This document shows, one piece after another, positions 17,482 to 46,659 of a DNA stretch of 64,000 nt. This DNA comes from Haliotis cracherodii (taxonomy: Eukaryota). Below the pieces are notes generated by a model that was not told the DNA's origin, made no database searches, and saw only the letters and a list, made by a program, of their open reading frames with translations. Every line of letters begins with the position of its first letter. Position 1 is the stretch's first letter. The stretch spans positions 64,666,001 to 64,730,000 of the forward strand of contig NW_027266286.1 of the NCBI RefSeq assembly GCF_022045235.1, given 5' to 3'. Made by a program: the position numbers and the translations under genes.

Positions 17482-18144
17482 TCAATGCATGGCTCTCTTG
17501 AGCTTGGCACGTGCATTCTGGAACCACACTTGGGCAACTCTTCTTGGAAGACCCGCCTCTTCTGCGATCATCCCGAGGTCATTTCCGGTTGGGTTGGTGT
17601 CAATGTCGAAGTACTTCTGTAAAACAGCTACCTGGTCCTCGTTGAAGGCTGTTCGGAATCTCTTTGATTTGGGTCGGCAGGTGACACTCTCGTCGTCGGG
17701 GTTGAGGACGTGGACTCGGCAAAGTACACGGCCGTCGTGGATGGCGAAGTCTTCTCCTGTGGACAACTGTCTTTGACACATGCTGCATGAGAAACATGCA
17801 AGGTGGTACATGTTCTCTCCGGCCGATCTGACCCAATCTCCGGACTCGATGTTACGTAGACAGGAGCTACACTTGGTCTCATGGACGCGGGCGAAGTCTC
17901 TCTGGCAGAATATGTTACCGTCCTTGACGAAACAAGAAGAATGTCCACCAAGCGTCACCTGACACACACAGCAACGCAGACAGTGCTCGTGCCACACATG
18001 ATCCCCAGCACGTAGATAGTACTGGTCAGTGATCACGTCACAACACGTGAAACACAAGGGGTCAGCGATGTTGAAACTAAGAGCGATGAAGTCTGCGGAC
18101 TCTTCCAAGTCCGAGGAGAGGAGGTCATATGACATATCCGACAT
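17482..18144 (-). CDS. Awh: L1: intronless LIM-homeobox protein, Arrowhead/Lhx6/8-like, 220 aa
   Basis: Two complete LIM domains with all 16 Zn ligands, carrying DWVR, YHLACF and QLSTGE.FA motifs. Homeodomain KRFRTAF...ID.NP.G.DL..IA...GL..RV.QVWFQN typical of Awh/Lhx6/8. Confidence 0.9.
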   Translation of the reverse strand: MSDMSYDLLSSDLEESADFIALSFNIADPLCFTCCDVITDQYYLRAGDHVWHEHCLRCCVCQVTLGGHSSCFVKDGNIFCQRDFARVHETKCSSCLRNIESGDWVRSAGENMYHLACFSCSMCQRQLSTGEDFAIHDGRVLCRVHVLNPDDESVTCRPKSKRFRTAFNEDQVAVLQKYFDIDTNPTGNDLGMIAEEAGLPRRVAQVWFQNARAKLKRAMH

Positions 18145-18239
18145 TGTAAAGGTATCCAGGAGGAGCTAGAGGAAGACTTGTGACGACGATAACGTGACGT
18201 GATGCTGAAATGTATGATGGAAAATGGTAAGCAGCCATT

Positions 18240-18273
18240 ATTATATGCTAAGTTGACAGTTCAGAGTGAACGC
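18240..18273 (-). promoter_or_regulatory. L1 core promoter: GCGTTCACTC + 18 bp + TATAAT
   Basis: Same motif and spacing as in the paralogues. Confidence 0.65.
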
Positions 18274-19829
18274 GTATGCTTTGGTGACGCGTGATGACCG
18301 CTTTGACACGCTGTGACGTCACAGCGCGTGACACAGCAACACTTGCTGAGTGATAAGTATTCACATTGTTTTCCCCTGATGGTTAATTGATCACTTGACG
18401 ATGAAGTGATTTTAAGCTTAGAACTTTCCAGGCTTGGAAGGTGCAGTCAGCCGCATCATAGCCAGCTAACAGTATGTTTTCAGAAAGCCGTTTGTGAAAG
18501 AATTATCTCATGATTGAAGTATTGACCTGATCTATCCCCAATGGCATCGATAAAACTCAATTGAATGAAAAGTATAGTATCACACACCCTGTCCTTACTG
18601 CAGTTAAGTCCCATTCATTATGTATATACTACTCAAAAGAAGTTAAAGAACAACCTATTCTTGTATATTACTGCAGTAAAATTGTCATGGCATCACAGAT
18701 TAAAAATTGAAAATGAAATACATAAAAAATACCTCTTCATCGTTATCTTTATATGGCATTTTTATAGGCCATCGGCAACTGATGTTACATGCACTTACGG
18801 TCTTTGAATAACACATTAACACTATTTTTTCTCACTTGCATTGCATGCTACAAGCATTGTCAGATGTCTAAATTTCAACATACATCAGCATAATATATTT
18901 CTGTAAATAGTATTTAGTGATTAGTATTTCTTGTGGAAATCTGCATAAACTTCACAAAGAAGCAAAATGTGATACTAATTTTATCCATGGTTACAAACTT
19001 TACAAAACTTTGCAAAATCTTTCTTATCTTTTCTTATCTTGGTTTTGTTATTATATTATATACATAGTATGTATATATGTGTAGTATTGATTGATTACGA
19101 TGAGCATAATGATAGGTGGTTAATCTAATAGTTCCTCATATAACTCAGATTGCTTTATGCTTTTTTACAATTTAGATATTGAAATTATATAATTTCCCTG
19201 ACAGTATCACCTTACTGTTAATGTCTGAAAAACACTTAAGTGGCATGAACAAATGATAAAATAATATACAAAAAAACTTTCTGTTAAGTATTTTGGGTAT
19301 CCAGCCCAAATTACATGTATATTTATGATAAACATTGATATGTAAGTCTAATTATGTATATGATTACAGTGCAATTAGACCATTTATTCGTTCAGTGGCA
19401 CTATTTGCATTAGAAACATACCGTAAAGCAATACAGTGTACCTAGACAAGGAGAAATAAACTACAACAATGGCATCGGCACAGAATCACGATTTTCTCAA
19501 CAGATCCGTGATATGCCAAGAAAAAAGACGCCAACTCAATAAAACAGCTTTATTACAAATAAATAGAGACAAATTATTTTATTGTTTCCTCACACACTAA
19601 TCTTCATAAAATATTGTAGAAATTCATTGGTAATAAAATGTTTTAGTTGAACACTTTGTGTTATCACATCAATCCCCTTCTTGCAAGGGGGCCTCTGTCA
19701 AGGCCTTGATTGTCAATGATTGTTGATGTTTTCATCTTACTACGAAATGTGATCAGCTTGATTAGCCATCATCGGATTACGACACACGCTTATCACTGTG
19801 GTGTCAAAGAAAATGCCATCATGACCCTC

Positions 19830-19865
19830 TCGTTCACTCTGACGCGCAAACCTCACCATATTAAA
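19830..19865 (+). promoter_or_regulatory. Promoter of truncated copy: TCGTTCACTC + 19 bp + TATTAAA
   Basis: Motif shared with the paralogues. Confidence 0.55.
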
Positions 19866-19952
19866 CGAGCAAGTGGAGACGATGTTTGTATTTTTCTTCT
19901 CTTGACTATTTCCACACAAGTCTTCCTCTAGTTCCTTCTACGCAGCTTCAGA

Positions 19953-20075
19953 ATGTCGGACATGTCATATGACCTCCTCTCCTCGGACTTGGAAGAGTCC
20001 GCAGACTTCATCGCTCTCAGTTTCAACATCGCTGACCCCTTGTGGAGGGAACGAGTGTATCGCGAGGACGAGTGA
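19953..20075 (+). pseudogene. 5'-only LIM-homeobox pseudogene (first 30 codons, then WRERVYREDE-stop)
   Basis: Encodes MSDMSYDLLSSDLEESADFIALSFNIADPL, then jumps at GTG (20042-20044) into spacer sequence seen at 23660. Confidence 0.9.
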
Positions 20076-44365: not shown

Positions 44366-44867
44366 TAAAGATATAAAAGATGAAGCACATGCTTTGCTAC
44401 CATGGCCATTATATAGATGCATTATGGCCACCCATGTAAATGTATGCTTTAAAGCATGGGCAAGTTTTTATTCGTTAACTGCTTGTTTAATGTGTCCTTG
44501 ATATTATTACCCTGGCTTGACCTCTTATGTTCCTAGAATCTTCTTAAGTATTTTATGTAAATAGACATGTATCATATTGTATCATATATAGTCTTGCATA
44601 CACCGCCAAGTGACTGGTCTTAAATGTATGTATACTTTTAGTATGTACACTCTAAAAAAAAAATTGATTTTTTTGGTAACATTTGACACAAGAGCCATCA
44701 TATTATGTTGTTCGGTATATTTATGCATGATATAAACAAACACAGTAATATCATTTTGTTACACAGTCATCATTCGTTGTCACGGGAGTAAATATTTTTT
44801 TGTAACAATCGTTTTCTGGCCCTTCACGTTAATGTTGAGTGTGAGTTACATTGTGTGTTAGAATACA

Positions 44868-45450
44868 TGGTTTAAACATATTCATGTTCACAAAAATGTG
44901 AACATGGATTGGTAAACAAGCGTAACGCTTATGTTAATACCGCTCAATTACACAGAAGACATGATACAATAAATATACCAAAGAAGGTTAGATGTAACAA
45001 ATCAATTGTACATGCCAAGCTAGATGTGTGTATATATAATAAATATATTTGCAGTTTATATTAAACAATTCATTTAATTGAAAATCTGCATGTCTTTAAT
45101 ATGAAGTTTTGAATAGAATCTAATGTTTGGATTTGCTCTTTCTTACTCAAATACGAATTTCCGCGTAGCACTGTTTGTAAAGAATAACCATGTTGGTAAA
45201 AATACATTTTCATTTCGAGGAACATAGTAACTTGTACAAACAAAAAAGAAGTGTAAAGCATCTTCTGTATGGTATCCACATGAACAATTTTTGGTATCCA
45301 AAATATATCTATCATACTGATCTGCGTTAAGATCGCTGCAGCCAAGCCTGAGGCGACTGTGAATAATTTGACAAATCCATAATTTGAATCCAAGTGAAAT
45401 AGACAAGTTGAATCCACTAAATACATGATAAAGATTTTATGTATTTGTAC
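44868..45450 (-). mobile_element. 5'-truncated CR1-group LINE remnant (ORF2 C-terminus + 3'UTR)
   Basis: Frameshifted IIHSRLRLGCSDLNAD...CSCGYHTEDALHFFFVC..Y and LRGN..LS...IQNFILKTCRF; ends in AATATGTTTAAAC. Confidence 0.8.
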
Positions 45451-45562
45451 GTAATATTTAAGAGTGCGGCTAAAATAAACACTTCTGTTTGTCTTAGTGA
45501 ATGAATAGTAGGCATTAAGAAACAATTGACTTGGAGTACTGCACAAATTGATAATCTGTTGG

Positions 45563-45905
45563 ACCGTAACTGTAGATATGACTCGTCAATACATCTCAAG
45601 CCTTAATAAGCCAATGATTGAACTACTGATAGAGTCAATCAAACCTCCGCTATGTGGTTCGTGACGGCGCGTGTCAACATGGCTGACACTGCCGTCACGC
45701 CCGAAGTCGTTCACTCAGTATGATGCACCGTAACTGTAAATATGACGCGTAAATACACCTCAAGCCTCAATCAGTCAGTGATTGAATATCGATGGAATTA
45801 GTCAATCCGCAGCGAGTTTGTACGTGACGGCGCGTGTCACCATGGCTGACAGTGCCGTCACTCCCGAAGTCGTTCACTCAGTCTGGTATGCGTAGAAGTA
45901 TATAA
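45563..45905 (+). promoter_or_regulatory. L9 promoter: 164-bp tandem duplication, each copy with a palindrome and TCGTTCACTC; TATATAA at 45899
   Basis: Units start at 45563 and 45727; motifs at 45707 and 45870. Confidence 0.7.
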
Positions 45906-45987
45906 CGTCATGGACGCACCGTAAGTCATCCACATCCTCTCTCGTCACCTGAGCAGCATCTTCATCTGTAACGTCGTTCGTTCCGCC

Positions 45988-46659
45988 ATGTCCCACTCGT
46001 CGTATATGTCCTCCTCAGCGTCGGATCTCGAGGATGAGATACATTCATATCTCACCAGTCTCAGCCCGGACCCTCATATGCCCATCTGTTTCACGTGCTG
46101 TGACGTCATCACTGACCAGTACTATCTACGTGCTGGGGATCACGTGTGGCACGAGCACTGTCTGCGTTGCTGTGTGTGTCAGGTGACGCTTGGCGGACAT
46201 TATTCTTGCTTCGTCAGGGACGGTAACATATTCTGCCAGAGAGACTTCACCCACGTTCACGAGATCAAGTGTAGCTCCTGTCTACGTAACATCGAGTCTG
46301 GAGATTGGGTCAGATCGGCCGGAGAGAACATGTACCACCTGGCATGTTTCTCATGCAGCGCGTGCCAAAGACAACTGTCCACAGGAGAGGACTTCGCCAT
46401 CCACGACGACCGCATACTATGCCGAGTCCACGTCCTCAACCCCCACGACGACAACGTCACCTGTCGACCAAAGTCTAAGAGATTCCGAACAGCCTTCAAC
46501 GAGGACCAGCTCGCCACTCTTCAGCGCCACTTCGAGATGGACCCCAACCCAAATAGCCTTCACCTTGATCAGGTCGCCATGGACGCAGGTCTGACGAAGA
46601 AGGTGACAAAAGTCTGGTTCCAAAATGCACGTGCAAAACTGAGGAAGTTAAAGCACTAA
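45988..46659 (+). CDS. L9: divergent/mosaic intronless LIM-homeobox protein, 223 aa
   Basis: LIM domains as in L1-L8; distinct N-terminus and homeodomain helices (LATLQRHFEMDPNPNSLHLDQVAMDAGLTKKVTKVWFQNARAK); AATAAA at 46849. Confidence 0.9.
   Translation: MSHSSYMSSSASDLEDEIHSYLTSLSPDPHMPICFTCCDVITDQYYLRAGDHVWHEHCLRCCVCQVTLGGHYSCFVRDGNIFCQRDFTHVHEIKCSSCLRNIESGDWVRSAGENMYHLACFSCSACQRQLSTGEDFAIHDDRILCRVHVLNPHDDNVTCRPKSKRFRTAFNEDQLATLQRHFEMDPNPNSLHLDQVAMDAGLTKKVTKVWFQNARAKLRKLKH

Follow-up and report, generated by a model that had tools for sequence, protein, structure and literature searches.

Nine single-exon LIM-homeobox genes of the Awh family in a partly tandem array of the abalone Haliotis cracherodii

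The window analysed here, a stretch of 64,000 nucleotides from the genome of Haliotis cracherodii (G000:C23:64666001-64730000 in the 1.18-Gb assembly), contains nine intact single-exon open reading frames (ORFs), g1 to g9, that encode LIM-homeodomain proteins derived from the Awh family and form a partly tandem array on contig C23. In the ORF listing of the window each encodes 220 amino acids except g6 and g9, which encode 223, and all nine were found intact at exactly the coordinates given by the first-pass annotation, which had been made from the sequence alone. The three copies that were scanned with Pfam each match the LIM domain twice (E 1e-24 to 8e-27) and the homeodomain once (E 1e-15 to 2e-16), and in an alignment with canonical Awh/Lhx8 proteins the zinc ligands (16/16) and the homeodomain core residues F8, F20, W48, F49, Q50, N51 and R53 are invariant, in agreement with the two complete LIM domains and the Q50 homeodomain already recognized. 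The array genes belong to the LIM-homeodomain class, which is defined by two N-terminal LIM domains with full sets of ligands followed by a homeodomain. The N-terminus is acidic and the linker between LIM2 and the homeodomain has approximately 14 residues, both as first described; the homeodomain, said to end one residue before the stop codon, has a Pfam match that ends at residue 217 of 220, approximately two residues before it, and the array ORFs end two to three residues past the homeodomain. Only two of the four runs of N in the window lie inside the array, both of them intergenic, and no array ORF touches an N. Long antisense ORFs that overlap the genes (e.g. 17192-17776) are without support and were ignored.

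Every gene has a TATA-like hexamer of its own (9/9), as first claimed, located 56-105 nt 5′ of the ATG, and most genes have ACGCGTCA and/or TGACGTCA (cyclic-AMP response element (CRE)-like) 40-75 nt 5′ of the TATA box. This proximal promoter module (18130-18330, 20940-21094 and equivalents elsewhere) is common even to copies whose flanks cannot be aligned. Either AATAAA or ATTAAA is found 22-433 nt 3′ of the stop codon in eight of the nine genes, which fits the earlier report of AATAAA downstream of most; in g6, neither occurs within 700 nt of the stop codon.

The tandem units that carry g2 to g5 are 93-97% identical across coding and non-coding sequence, and the gap inside the block is bounded by unit positions 1364 and 1445, so that approximately 81 nt of the unit are absent where 141 N were placed. 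Outside the block, the match of g1, g6, g7 and g8 to the unit is confined to the stretch between 40-150 nt 5′ of the ATG and a few nucleotides past the stop codon; g7 and g8 share approximately 150 nt of promoter as well as a 3′ flank up to the AATAAA, interrupted in g8 by a short interspersed nuclear element (SINE), and g9 matches the tandem unit inside the coding sequence (CDS) only. Divergence between copies is 1-7% in the CDS and far greater in the flanks. Since the flanks are undetectable although the synonymous divergence (dS) of the CDS is only approximately 0.2, the pattern points to homogenised coding regions, younger than the duplications. The locus is a tandem array with concerted evolution, comprising homologous head-to-tail units and conversion tracts. 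A dispersed repeat of approximately 110-120 nt with a tRNA-like head (GGTCGGGTAGCCTAGTGGTTAAAGC...GGTTCGATTCCC) is present in the 3′ flanks of g6, g8 and g9 among other places (Table 1) and has very high depth in all four read sets; it is probably a tRNA-derived SINE.

Table 1. Features of the array and of its surroundings, by position in the window unless a contig is given.
Feature	Position	Strand	Description
g1	17482-18144	-	220 aa, LIM-LIM-homeodomain, single ORF; Pfam
g1 promoter	18240-18245 (TATAAT)		TGACGTCA and ACGCGTCA upstream
g2	21095-21757	+	220 aa; TATAAA 20990-20995
g3	24717-25379	+	220 aa
g4	28341-29003	+	220 aa
g5	31952-32614	+	220 aa counted from the conserved ATG; ORF listing starts at TTG 31865
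g6	36058-36729	-	223 aa, N-terminal extension of 3 aa; TATAAA 36780-36785
g7	38688-39350	+	220 aa; convergent with g8
g8	42161-42823	-	220 aa; tRNA-like SINE inserted in 3′ flank
g9	45988-46659	+	223 aa; own N-terminus and homeodomain, array-like LIM1-LIM2-linker
g0	G000:C23:64551088-64551894 (L010:1198-1977)	-	259-aa single-ORF LIM-LIM-homeodomain gene, 115 kb upstream
Tandem block	20042-32879	+	head-to-tail 3.62-kb units with g2-g5; includes gap 30809-30949
Truncated 5′ gene fragment	19915-20044	+	38 nt of leader and first 92 nt of CDS; abuts left edge of tandem block
CDS-end duplicate, ~228 nt	22077-22304	+	last ~100 nt of CDS and 3′ flank (C-terminal fragment of homeodomain)
Same CDS-end duplicate in other full units	25693-25918, 29317-29542	+	
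Assembly gap	30809-30949		between g4 and g5, inside repeat unit; flanks collinear with 3.62-kb unit
Assembly gap	40505-40679		between 3′ flanks of g7 and g8, past their predicted poly(A) signals
Dispersed repeat copies	6807-6915, 9597-9704, 11555-11677, 35686-35794, 41911-42016, 44258-44364		
Dispersed repeat copies, further	46999-47108, 48072-48168, 61291-61395, 63420-63538		also one per tandem unit
Degenerate microsatellite	12376-13921		long, (AC)n-rich; GC skew -0.54, AT skew +0.52; N runs 12638-12982 and 13087-13262 inside
bHLH gene	4017-4712	-	single ORF; Pfam HLH E 1e-14
tRNA-Asp (GTC) gene	51367-51438	-	Rfam (61 bits) and ARAGORN agree

The ratio of nonsynonymous to synonymous divergence (dN/dS, omega) is 0.08-0.30 in pairwise comparisons among g1-g8 (dS 0.02-0.26) and 0.29-0.38 in comparisons with g9. 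Maximum-likelihood estimates (GY+F3X4) are 0.20 for all nine genes and 0.14 for g1-g8 and, by region, 0.20-0.23 for the LIM domains and 0.08-0.11 for the homeodomain, far lower than the value near 1 that the first-pass annotation had named, in combination with a lack of expression at every stage, as fatal to its reading. Four independent pairs of copies have 36 nonsynonymous and 63 synonymous differences, where neutrality predicts 77% nonsynonymous (binomial p = 8e-18). On these substitution patterns the copies are judged to be functional genes under purifying selection, not pseudogenes. A chance origin of the ORFs is excluded because all nine are intact, their dN/dS is far below 1 and orthologues are present in three other species.

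The ninth gene is a mosaic. Its dS relative to g1-g8 is high for the N-terminus (1.56) and the homeodomain (1.34) but low for LIM1 (0.23), LIM2 (0.21) and the linker (0.26), and the values of these last three segments equal the dS among g1-g8 themselves. Orthologues of g9 in distant species differ from each other at 11-17 of the 128 residues of the LIM segment and at 0-6 of the 62 residues of the homeodomain, and the LIM segment of g9 in the window genome, in H. rubra and in H. asinina resembles the main copies of the same species more closely, the fewest differences being 8-10. The g9-type and main-type homeodomains are 25 of 62 residues apart. The mosaic of dS values and the species-wise pattern of the LIM segment indicate that the LIM module has been exchanged between paralogues in several lineages while the homeodomain types stayed distinct, and g9 is an old paralogue in which gene conversion has made the LIM region like that of the array.

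Among the best 120 database matches of the array proteins, every one that was named by its source is Awh, Lhx6/8 or lim-4, except one labelled Lhx2, and canonical mollusc Awh proteins match with 46-53% identity. The Awh/Lhx6/8 clade that includes the array has a support of 99 in a quick tree of 66 rows and 100/100 in a careful tree of 39 rows, so that the named matches and the trees bear out the Awh/Lhx6/8 identity proposed from motifs. In the careful tree the array forms a clade (100/99) with two sequences from ENA, and both trees place the neighbouring gene g0 as the sister of the array (89 in the quick tree, 92/93 in the careful one). A sister relation between the array and the canonical Awh of gastropods is not rejected (approximately unbiased test, p = 0.29) and is favoured because the N-terminal motif MSDMS.D..SSD.E is common to the array and to canonical Haliotis and other gastropod Awh proteins in the alignment.

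The intron-containing Awh that was to be sought as the parent is present in the genome, on contig C19; the canonical Awh of this genome is multi-exon rather than already intronless, the state that had been named, along with an earlier description of the cluster, as refuting the reading. This gene (P0006, 279 aa) has at least five coding exons, which were compared singly and not joined, with its coding sequence split at amino acids 33/34, 94/95, 164/165 and 260/261, and a C-terminal tail of 45 amino acids. The array ORFs are continuous through the first three of these intron sites, and the canonical tail is gone. Like canonical Awh/Lhx6/8 proteins, the array proteins have two LIM domains and a Q50 homeodomain, the zinc ligands, the base-contacting residues and the acidic N-terminal motif (of gastropod Awh); but canonical Awh has at least four coding introns and the array genes have none, the sequence identity is only 48-50%, the linker is shorter, the tail of approximately 45 amino acids is absent, the homeodomain has derived WFQNARAK and AGL signatures unlike those of canonical Awh, and the array family consists of nine copies and the more distant g0 as against one canonical Awh. 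Lacking the multi-exon structure and the C-terminal tail by which the Awh family is recognized, the array genes are derived members of that family, not Awh orthologues. They share with processed retrogenes the lack of the parent's coding introns and a position at another locus: three intron sites have been lost, and the array is on C23 while the parent is on C19. The earlier description of the genes as retroposed or intron-stripped and tail-less therefore stands as regards the three intron sites and the tail, whereas retroposition is unproven, no poly(A) relic having been found.

Genes of the array are modelled in RefSeq as 'LIM/homeobox protein Awh-like' in H. rubra (XP_046554330-37), H. rufescens (XP_046380756-65) and H. 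asinina (XP_067674901-11), and evidently those of the window genome are in RefSeq also. Each of these three species has a g9-type orthologue with 88.8-97.8% identity to that of the window, and g0, g9 and the main copies are on one contig in H. rufescens and H. asinina. In the quick tree the window copies pair one-to-one with copies of H. rufescens (g6 with Hruf_b, support 98), and the copies of H. rubra and H. asinina fall outside this group, those of H. asinina pairing with each other and those of H. rubra in a polytomy. Beyond Haliotis, the only relatives are two near-identical ENA proteins (P0004 and P0138) that have approximately 70% identity and are also tail-less; a search of representatives of all proteins and a search seeded with P0138 yielded no further tail-less relatives. 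The top representative match, P0209, was rejected as a relative of the array; this Awh model is of the canonical type, and its LIM pair is duplicated. The amplified cluster is thus as lineage-specific as first supposed, being found in Haliotis and those two ENA proteins alone. Between H. cracherodii and H. asinina, canonical Awh is 97.8% identical and g0 96.9%, as against 89.7% for g9 and 90.5% for the best pair of main array proteins; the array proteins diverge between species much faster than canonical Awh or g0.

The gene g0 (XP_071114319.1 in H. cracherodii) is intronless, with a longer linker than the array genes and a short tail, and in the alignment its homeodomain carries KSKR, AGL and WFQNARAK, derived signatures that the array has too. 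Its orthologues in H. rubra (XP_046546407.1), H. rufescens and H. asinina have 97-98% identity to it.

Both activities of a LIM-homeodomain protein can be predicted for the array. By standard homeodomain numbering, canonical Awh and both array types (g1 and g9) have the same base-contacting residues, R3, R5, V47, Q50, N51 and A54; identical contacts predict a common TAAT-type core, and the array proteins are expected to bind Awh-type TAAT-core sites. The genome contains one match to the exon that encodes the LIM-interaction domain (LID) of the cofactor LDB/Chip (DVMVVGEPTLMGGEFGDEDERLITRLENTQ; G000:C80:28060193-28060279, L034:1501-1587), and we take this LID to be almost identical to that of vertebrate LDB1. 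A complex was modelled from residues 25-150 of g1, four zinc ions and a 41-aa LID peptide of the genome's own LDB. The model of the g1 LIM pair with the LID scored 0.67, a mark attained in 51 of the 78 solved complexes and in 2 of the 108 mismatched pairs, and the best control scored 0.12; at least 95% of the contacts are the same across runs, and the partner has a predicted local distance difference test value (pLDDT) of at least 72. In the model, LIM1 carries the C-terminal half of the LID and LIM2 the N-terminal half, so that the peptide runs along LIM2-LIM1 as in the solved structures of LMO4 and Lhx3 with LDB1. The model supports binding of the LID of abalone LDB by the LIM pair, as a likeness and not as proof.

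Leads on expression came from sequencing runs, which were compared over positions 16900-22800 of the window (5,901 nt), and from a published study of another abalone. Run X1 (105 Mb of contigs, its type taken as RNA by guess alone) has contigs only over the coding regions of g1 and g2, with a depth of 100-590 and zero in the unique intergenic bins, and one of these contigs runs from the stop codon into a 3′ flank without the 450-nt internal duplication; this coverage looks like that of transcripts. Runs X4 and X6 cover genic and intergenic sequence alike and for that reason are DNA, and X3 yielded one low-depth contig over these positions. In the gonads of H. laevigata, a transcript with its best match to the H. 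rubra orthologue of g0 was near zero in ten immature samples, was present at approximately 5-41 normalised counts in nine of ten maturing ovaries and at zero in one, and had a log2 fold change of 6.2 in maturing ovary (adjusted p = 2e-5) (10.1101/2025.08.18.670794). The vertebrate Lhx8 is a germ-cell-specific oocyte factor (PMC4487509, PMC5055334). A role of the array in the germline or early embryo may be reasonably but only tentatively suggested from these leads, and is not itself a finding.

Elsewhere in the window are a single-ORF basic helix-loop-helix (bHLH) gene, whose basic-HLH sequence presumably resembles the Olig/Beta3 (BHLHE22/23) group, a tRNA-Asp gene and a long degenerate microsatellite (Table 1).

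The best overall explanation, which we consider quite probable, is that these genes constitute a Haliotis-wide family of single-exon LIM-homeodomain genes derived from Awh and kept by selection. An Awh-type copy would have lost all of its coding introns, the simplest route being that an mRNA of the multi-exon parent on another chromosome was retroposed, would have lost its C-terminal tail and would have gained a compact promoter made of a TATA box and CRE-like sites. Multiplication at the level of DNA would first have produced the old g9 and main lineages (g0, which is more distant, lies 115 kb off), then the inverted and dispersed copies g1, g6, g7 and g8, and most recently the 3.62-kb head-to-tail block of g2-g5. 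Every copy is kept intact by purifying selection, and gene conversion holds LIM1, LIM2 and the linker alike in g9 and the main copies while the homeodomain types stay distinct. The protein would be expected to bind Awh-type TAAT-core sites and to recruit LDB/Chip by means of its LIM pair, and the result would be a complete but minimal LIM-homeodomain factor produced from many gene copies, for which the female germline or early embryo would be the likeliest setting, as a place where a high dosage from short intronless genes may be useful.

Several observations weigh against this explanation in one part or another. The copy number of the tandem block spans an assembly gap, and the count rests on the assembly rather than on long reads. 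The outgroups of the trees covered just Lmx and Lhx3/4, two of the five other LIM-homeodomain families (Lhx1/5, Lhx2/9 and Islet were not included); the place of the array within the protostome Awh genes is a polytomy in the tree; and the sister relation of g0 and the array joins two long branches and is unstarred in the careful tree. Solved structures of LIM domains with LDB1 exist, so the success of the complex model may reflect memory. The confinement of X1 coverage to the CDS also fits DNA of a relative, of which only conserved coding sequence would pass the 90% filter. The induction in ovary concerns the orthologue of g0, not the array, and no array accession occurs among the examined parts of the supplements to the H. 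laevigata study. Finally, no run of seven or more A is present within 600 nt 3′ of g0, g1, g3 or g6-g9, target-site duplications not having been searched for.

With no surviving poly(A) tract, loss in place or recombination with a cDNA might instead have removed the introns from an Awh paralogue that had been duplicated in tandem. Two Awh genes are known from bivalves (PMC5322547), so that the source might have been an old second paralogue, and the unresolved position of the array among protostome Awh genes agrees with such an origin. The missing relic does not exclude retroposition, however, because its absence is expected for an old event, and loss in place is made rather unlikely by the location on a different contig, C19, of the only multi-exon gene of clear Awh type in the genome scan, by the joint absence of the three testable intron sites from g0, g9 and the main copies, and by the N-terminal motif, which matches gastropod Awh specifically. 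Retroposition is a plausible and the simplest route, not a demonstrated one. The notion that the array consists of processed pseudogenes, or of one gene inflated by the assembly, could appeal to the close similarity of the tandem units and to the gap within their block, but it is largely refuted and scarcely credible: the nine ORFs are intact with an omega of 0.14-0.20 and a clear departure from neutrality, five of the nine copies lie outside the block with unique flanks, the copies diverge slightly in the CDS and far more in the flanks, and three other species, independently assembled, have multiple copies.

Granted that the genes function, canonical Awh, Lhx6/8 and lim-4 are chiefly neuronal, imaginal-disc or forebrain factors (established knowledge; PMC3559379), and the array might likewise be somatic, for example neural or sensory, its multiplicity resulting from local duplication and drift. 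This possibility is the less likely one given that nine copies are under purifying selection and that copies have been kept in at least four species, that the genes are compact, TATA-driven and single-exon, that the linked relative g0 is induced in ovary, and that the proteins diverge much faster between species (identity of approximately 90%, as opposed to 97.8% for canonical Awh), as is typical of homeobox duplicates of reproduction and the early embryo. A different function would be that of competitive antagonists, the tail-less proteins occupying Awh sites and titrating LDB/Chip in an LMO-like or dominant-negative manner. In its favour, the canonical tail of approximately 45 amino acids is absent and the linker shortened, the base-contacting residues are those of Awh, the model supports binding of the LID, and a high copy number suits titration; LMO proteins, too, are short, are dominated by a tandem LIM pair and bind the LID of LDB1. 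But LMO proteins are LIM-only, whereas the array proteins keep a full homeodomain that is highly constrained (omega as above, 0.08-0.11); the acidic N-terminus, conserved with canonical Awh, could itself activate; an activating role of the lost tail in molluscs would be an assumption; and recruitment of LDB alone supports activation in known LIM-homeodomain complexes, as is well established. Antagonism is on balance improbable, and the derived, selectively kept Awh family with the female germline or early embryo as its likeliest setting is preferred.

The nearest parallel is DUX4/Dux, an intronless homeobox ORF that is thought to have been retrotransposed from an intron-bearing parent and was amplified head to tail (PMC3004920, PMC13558733). 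The D4Z4 units of placental mammals are 3.3 kb in length and the abalone g2-g5 unit 3.62 kb, both being head-to-tail units of a few kilobases. However, DUX proteins have PRD-like double homeodomains and no LIM domains, whereas the array is of the LIM class; D4Z4 consists of tens of nearly identical, GC-rich, epigenetically repressed units, whereas the abalone has four tandem units that are 93-97% alike and five dispersed or inverted copies, each gene with a TATA promoter; and a role in embryonic genome activation has been shown for DUX but is conjectured for the array. Other lineage-specific expansions of homeobox genes are known, many of them maternal or expressed during cleavage (PMC5322547, PMC8524836, PMC11202083): Obox of mouse, ETCHbox/LEUTX of eutherians, Shx of lepidopterans, SPILE/TALE of spiralians and the PRD and TALE genes of oyster are, like the array, taxon-restricted and fast-evolving tandem duplicates, but all are of the ANTP, PRD or TALE class, and early expression of the LIM-class array is conjectured. 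In full, the comparison would make the array a LIM-class counterpart of Dux and Obox, a retrogene derived from Awh/Lhx8 as an ancestral oocyte factor and expressed in a burst in the oocyte or at embryonic genome activation, with an LDB-binding LIM module conserved by conversion and diverging homeodomains; this extended form is doubtful.

Two Awh genes of oyster and a lophotrochozoan-specific LIM clade were described by Paps et al. (PMC5322547), and no account of these abalone genes, or of a comparable array in the LIM class, was found in the literature. The claim that the cluster had not been described holds for the array, on which no paper was found, but not for the individual genes, which RefSeq already models as Awh-like. 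The novelty lies not in the sequences but in the array as a phenomenon, in its intronless origin, in the conversion mosaic and in the link to g0.

LIM-homeobox genes are very conservative regulators, with six families that usually have one or two multi-intron copies each per invertebrate genome. The array shows that the LIM class, too, can follow the path of DUX, Obox, Shx and the spiralian TALE genes, from retrogene to tandem array to fast evolution, and it is a clean natural case of domain-specific conversion in which the LIM modules are homogenised and the homeodomains stay distinct. If the reading of the array as a counterpart of Dux and Obox is true, modular concerted evolution separates the cofactor interface from the rest of the protein. 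The induction of g0 in ovary connects to the oocyte role of vertebrate Lhx8 and raises a question that can be tested in a farmed, spawnable mollusc, namely whether a germline function is ancestral to the Lhx6/8 family. For abalone aquaculture, the array provides candidates for markers of oogenesis and egg quality or for genes that regulate them.

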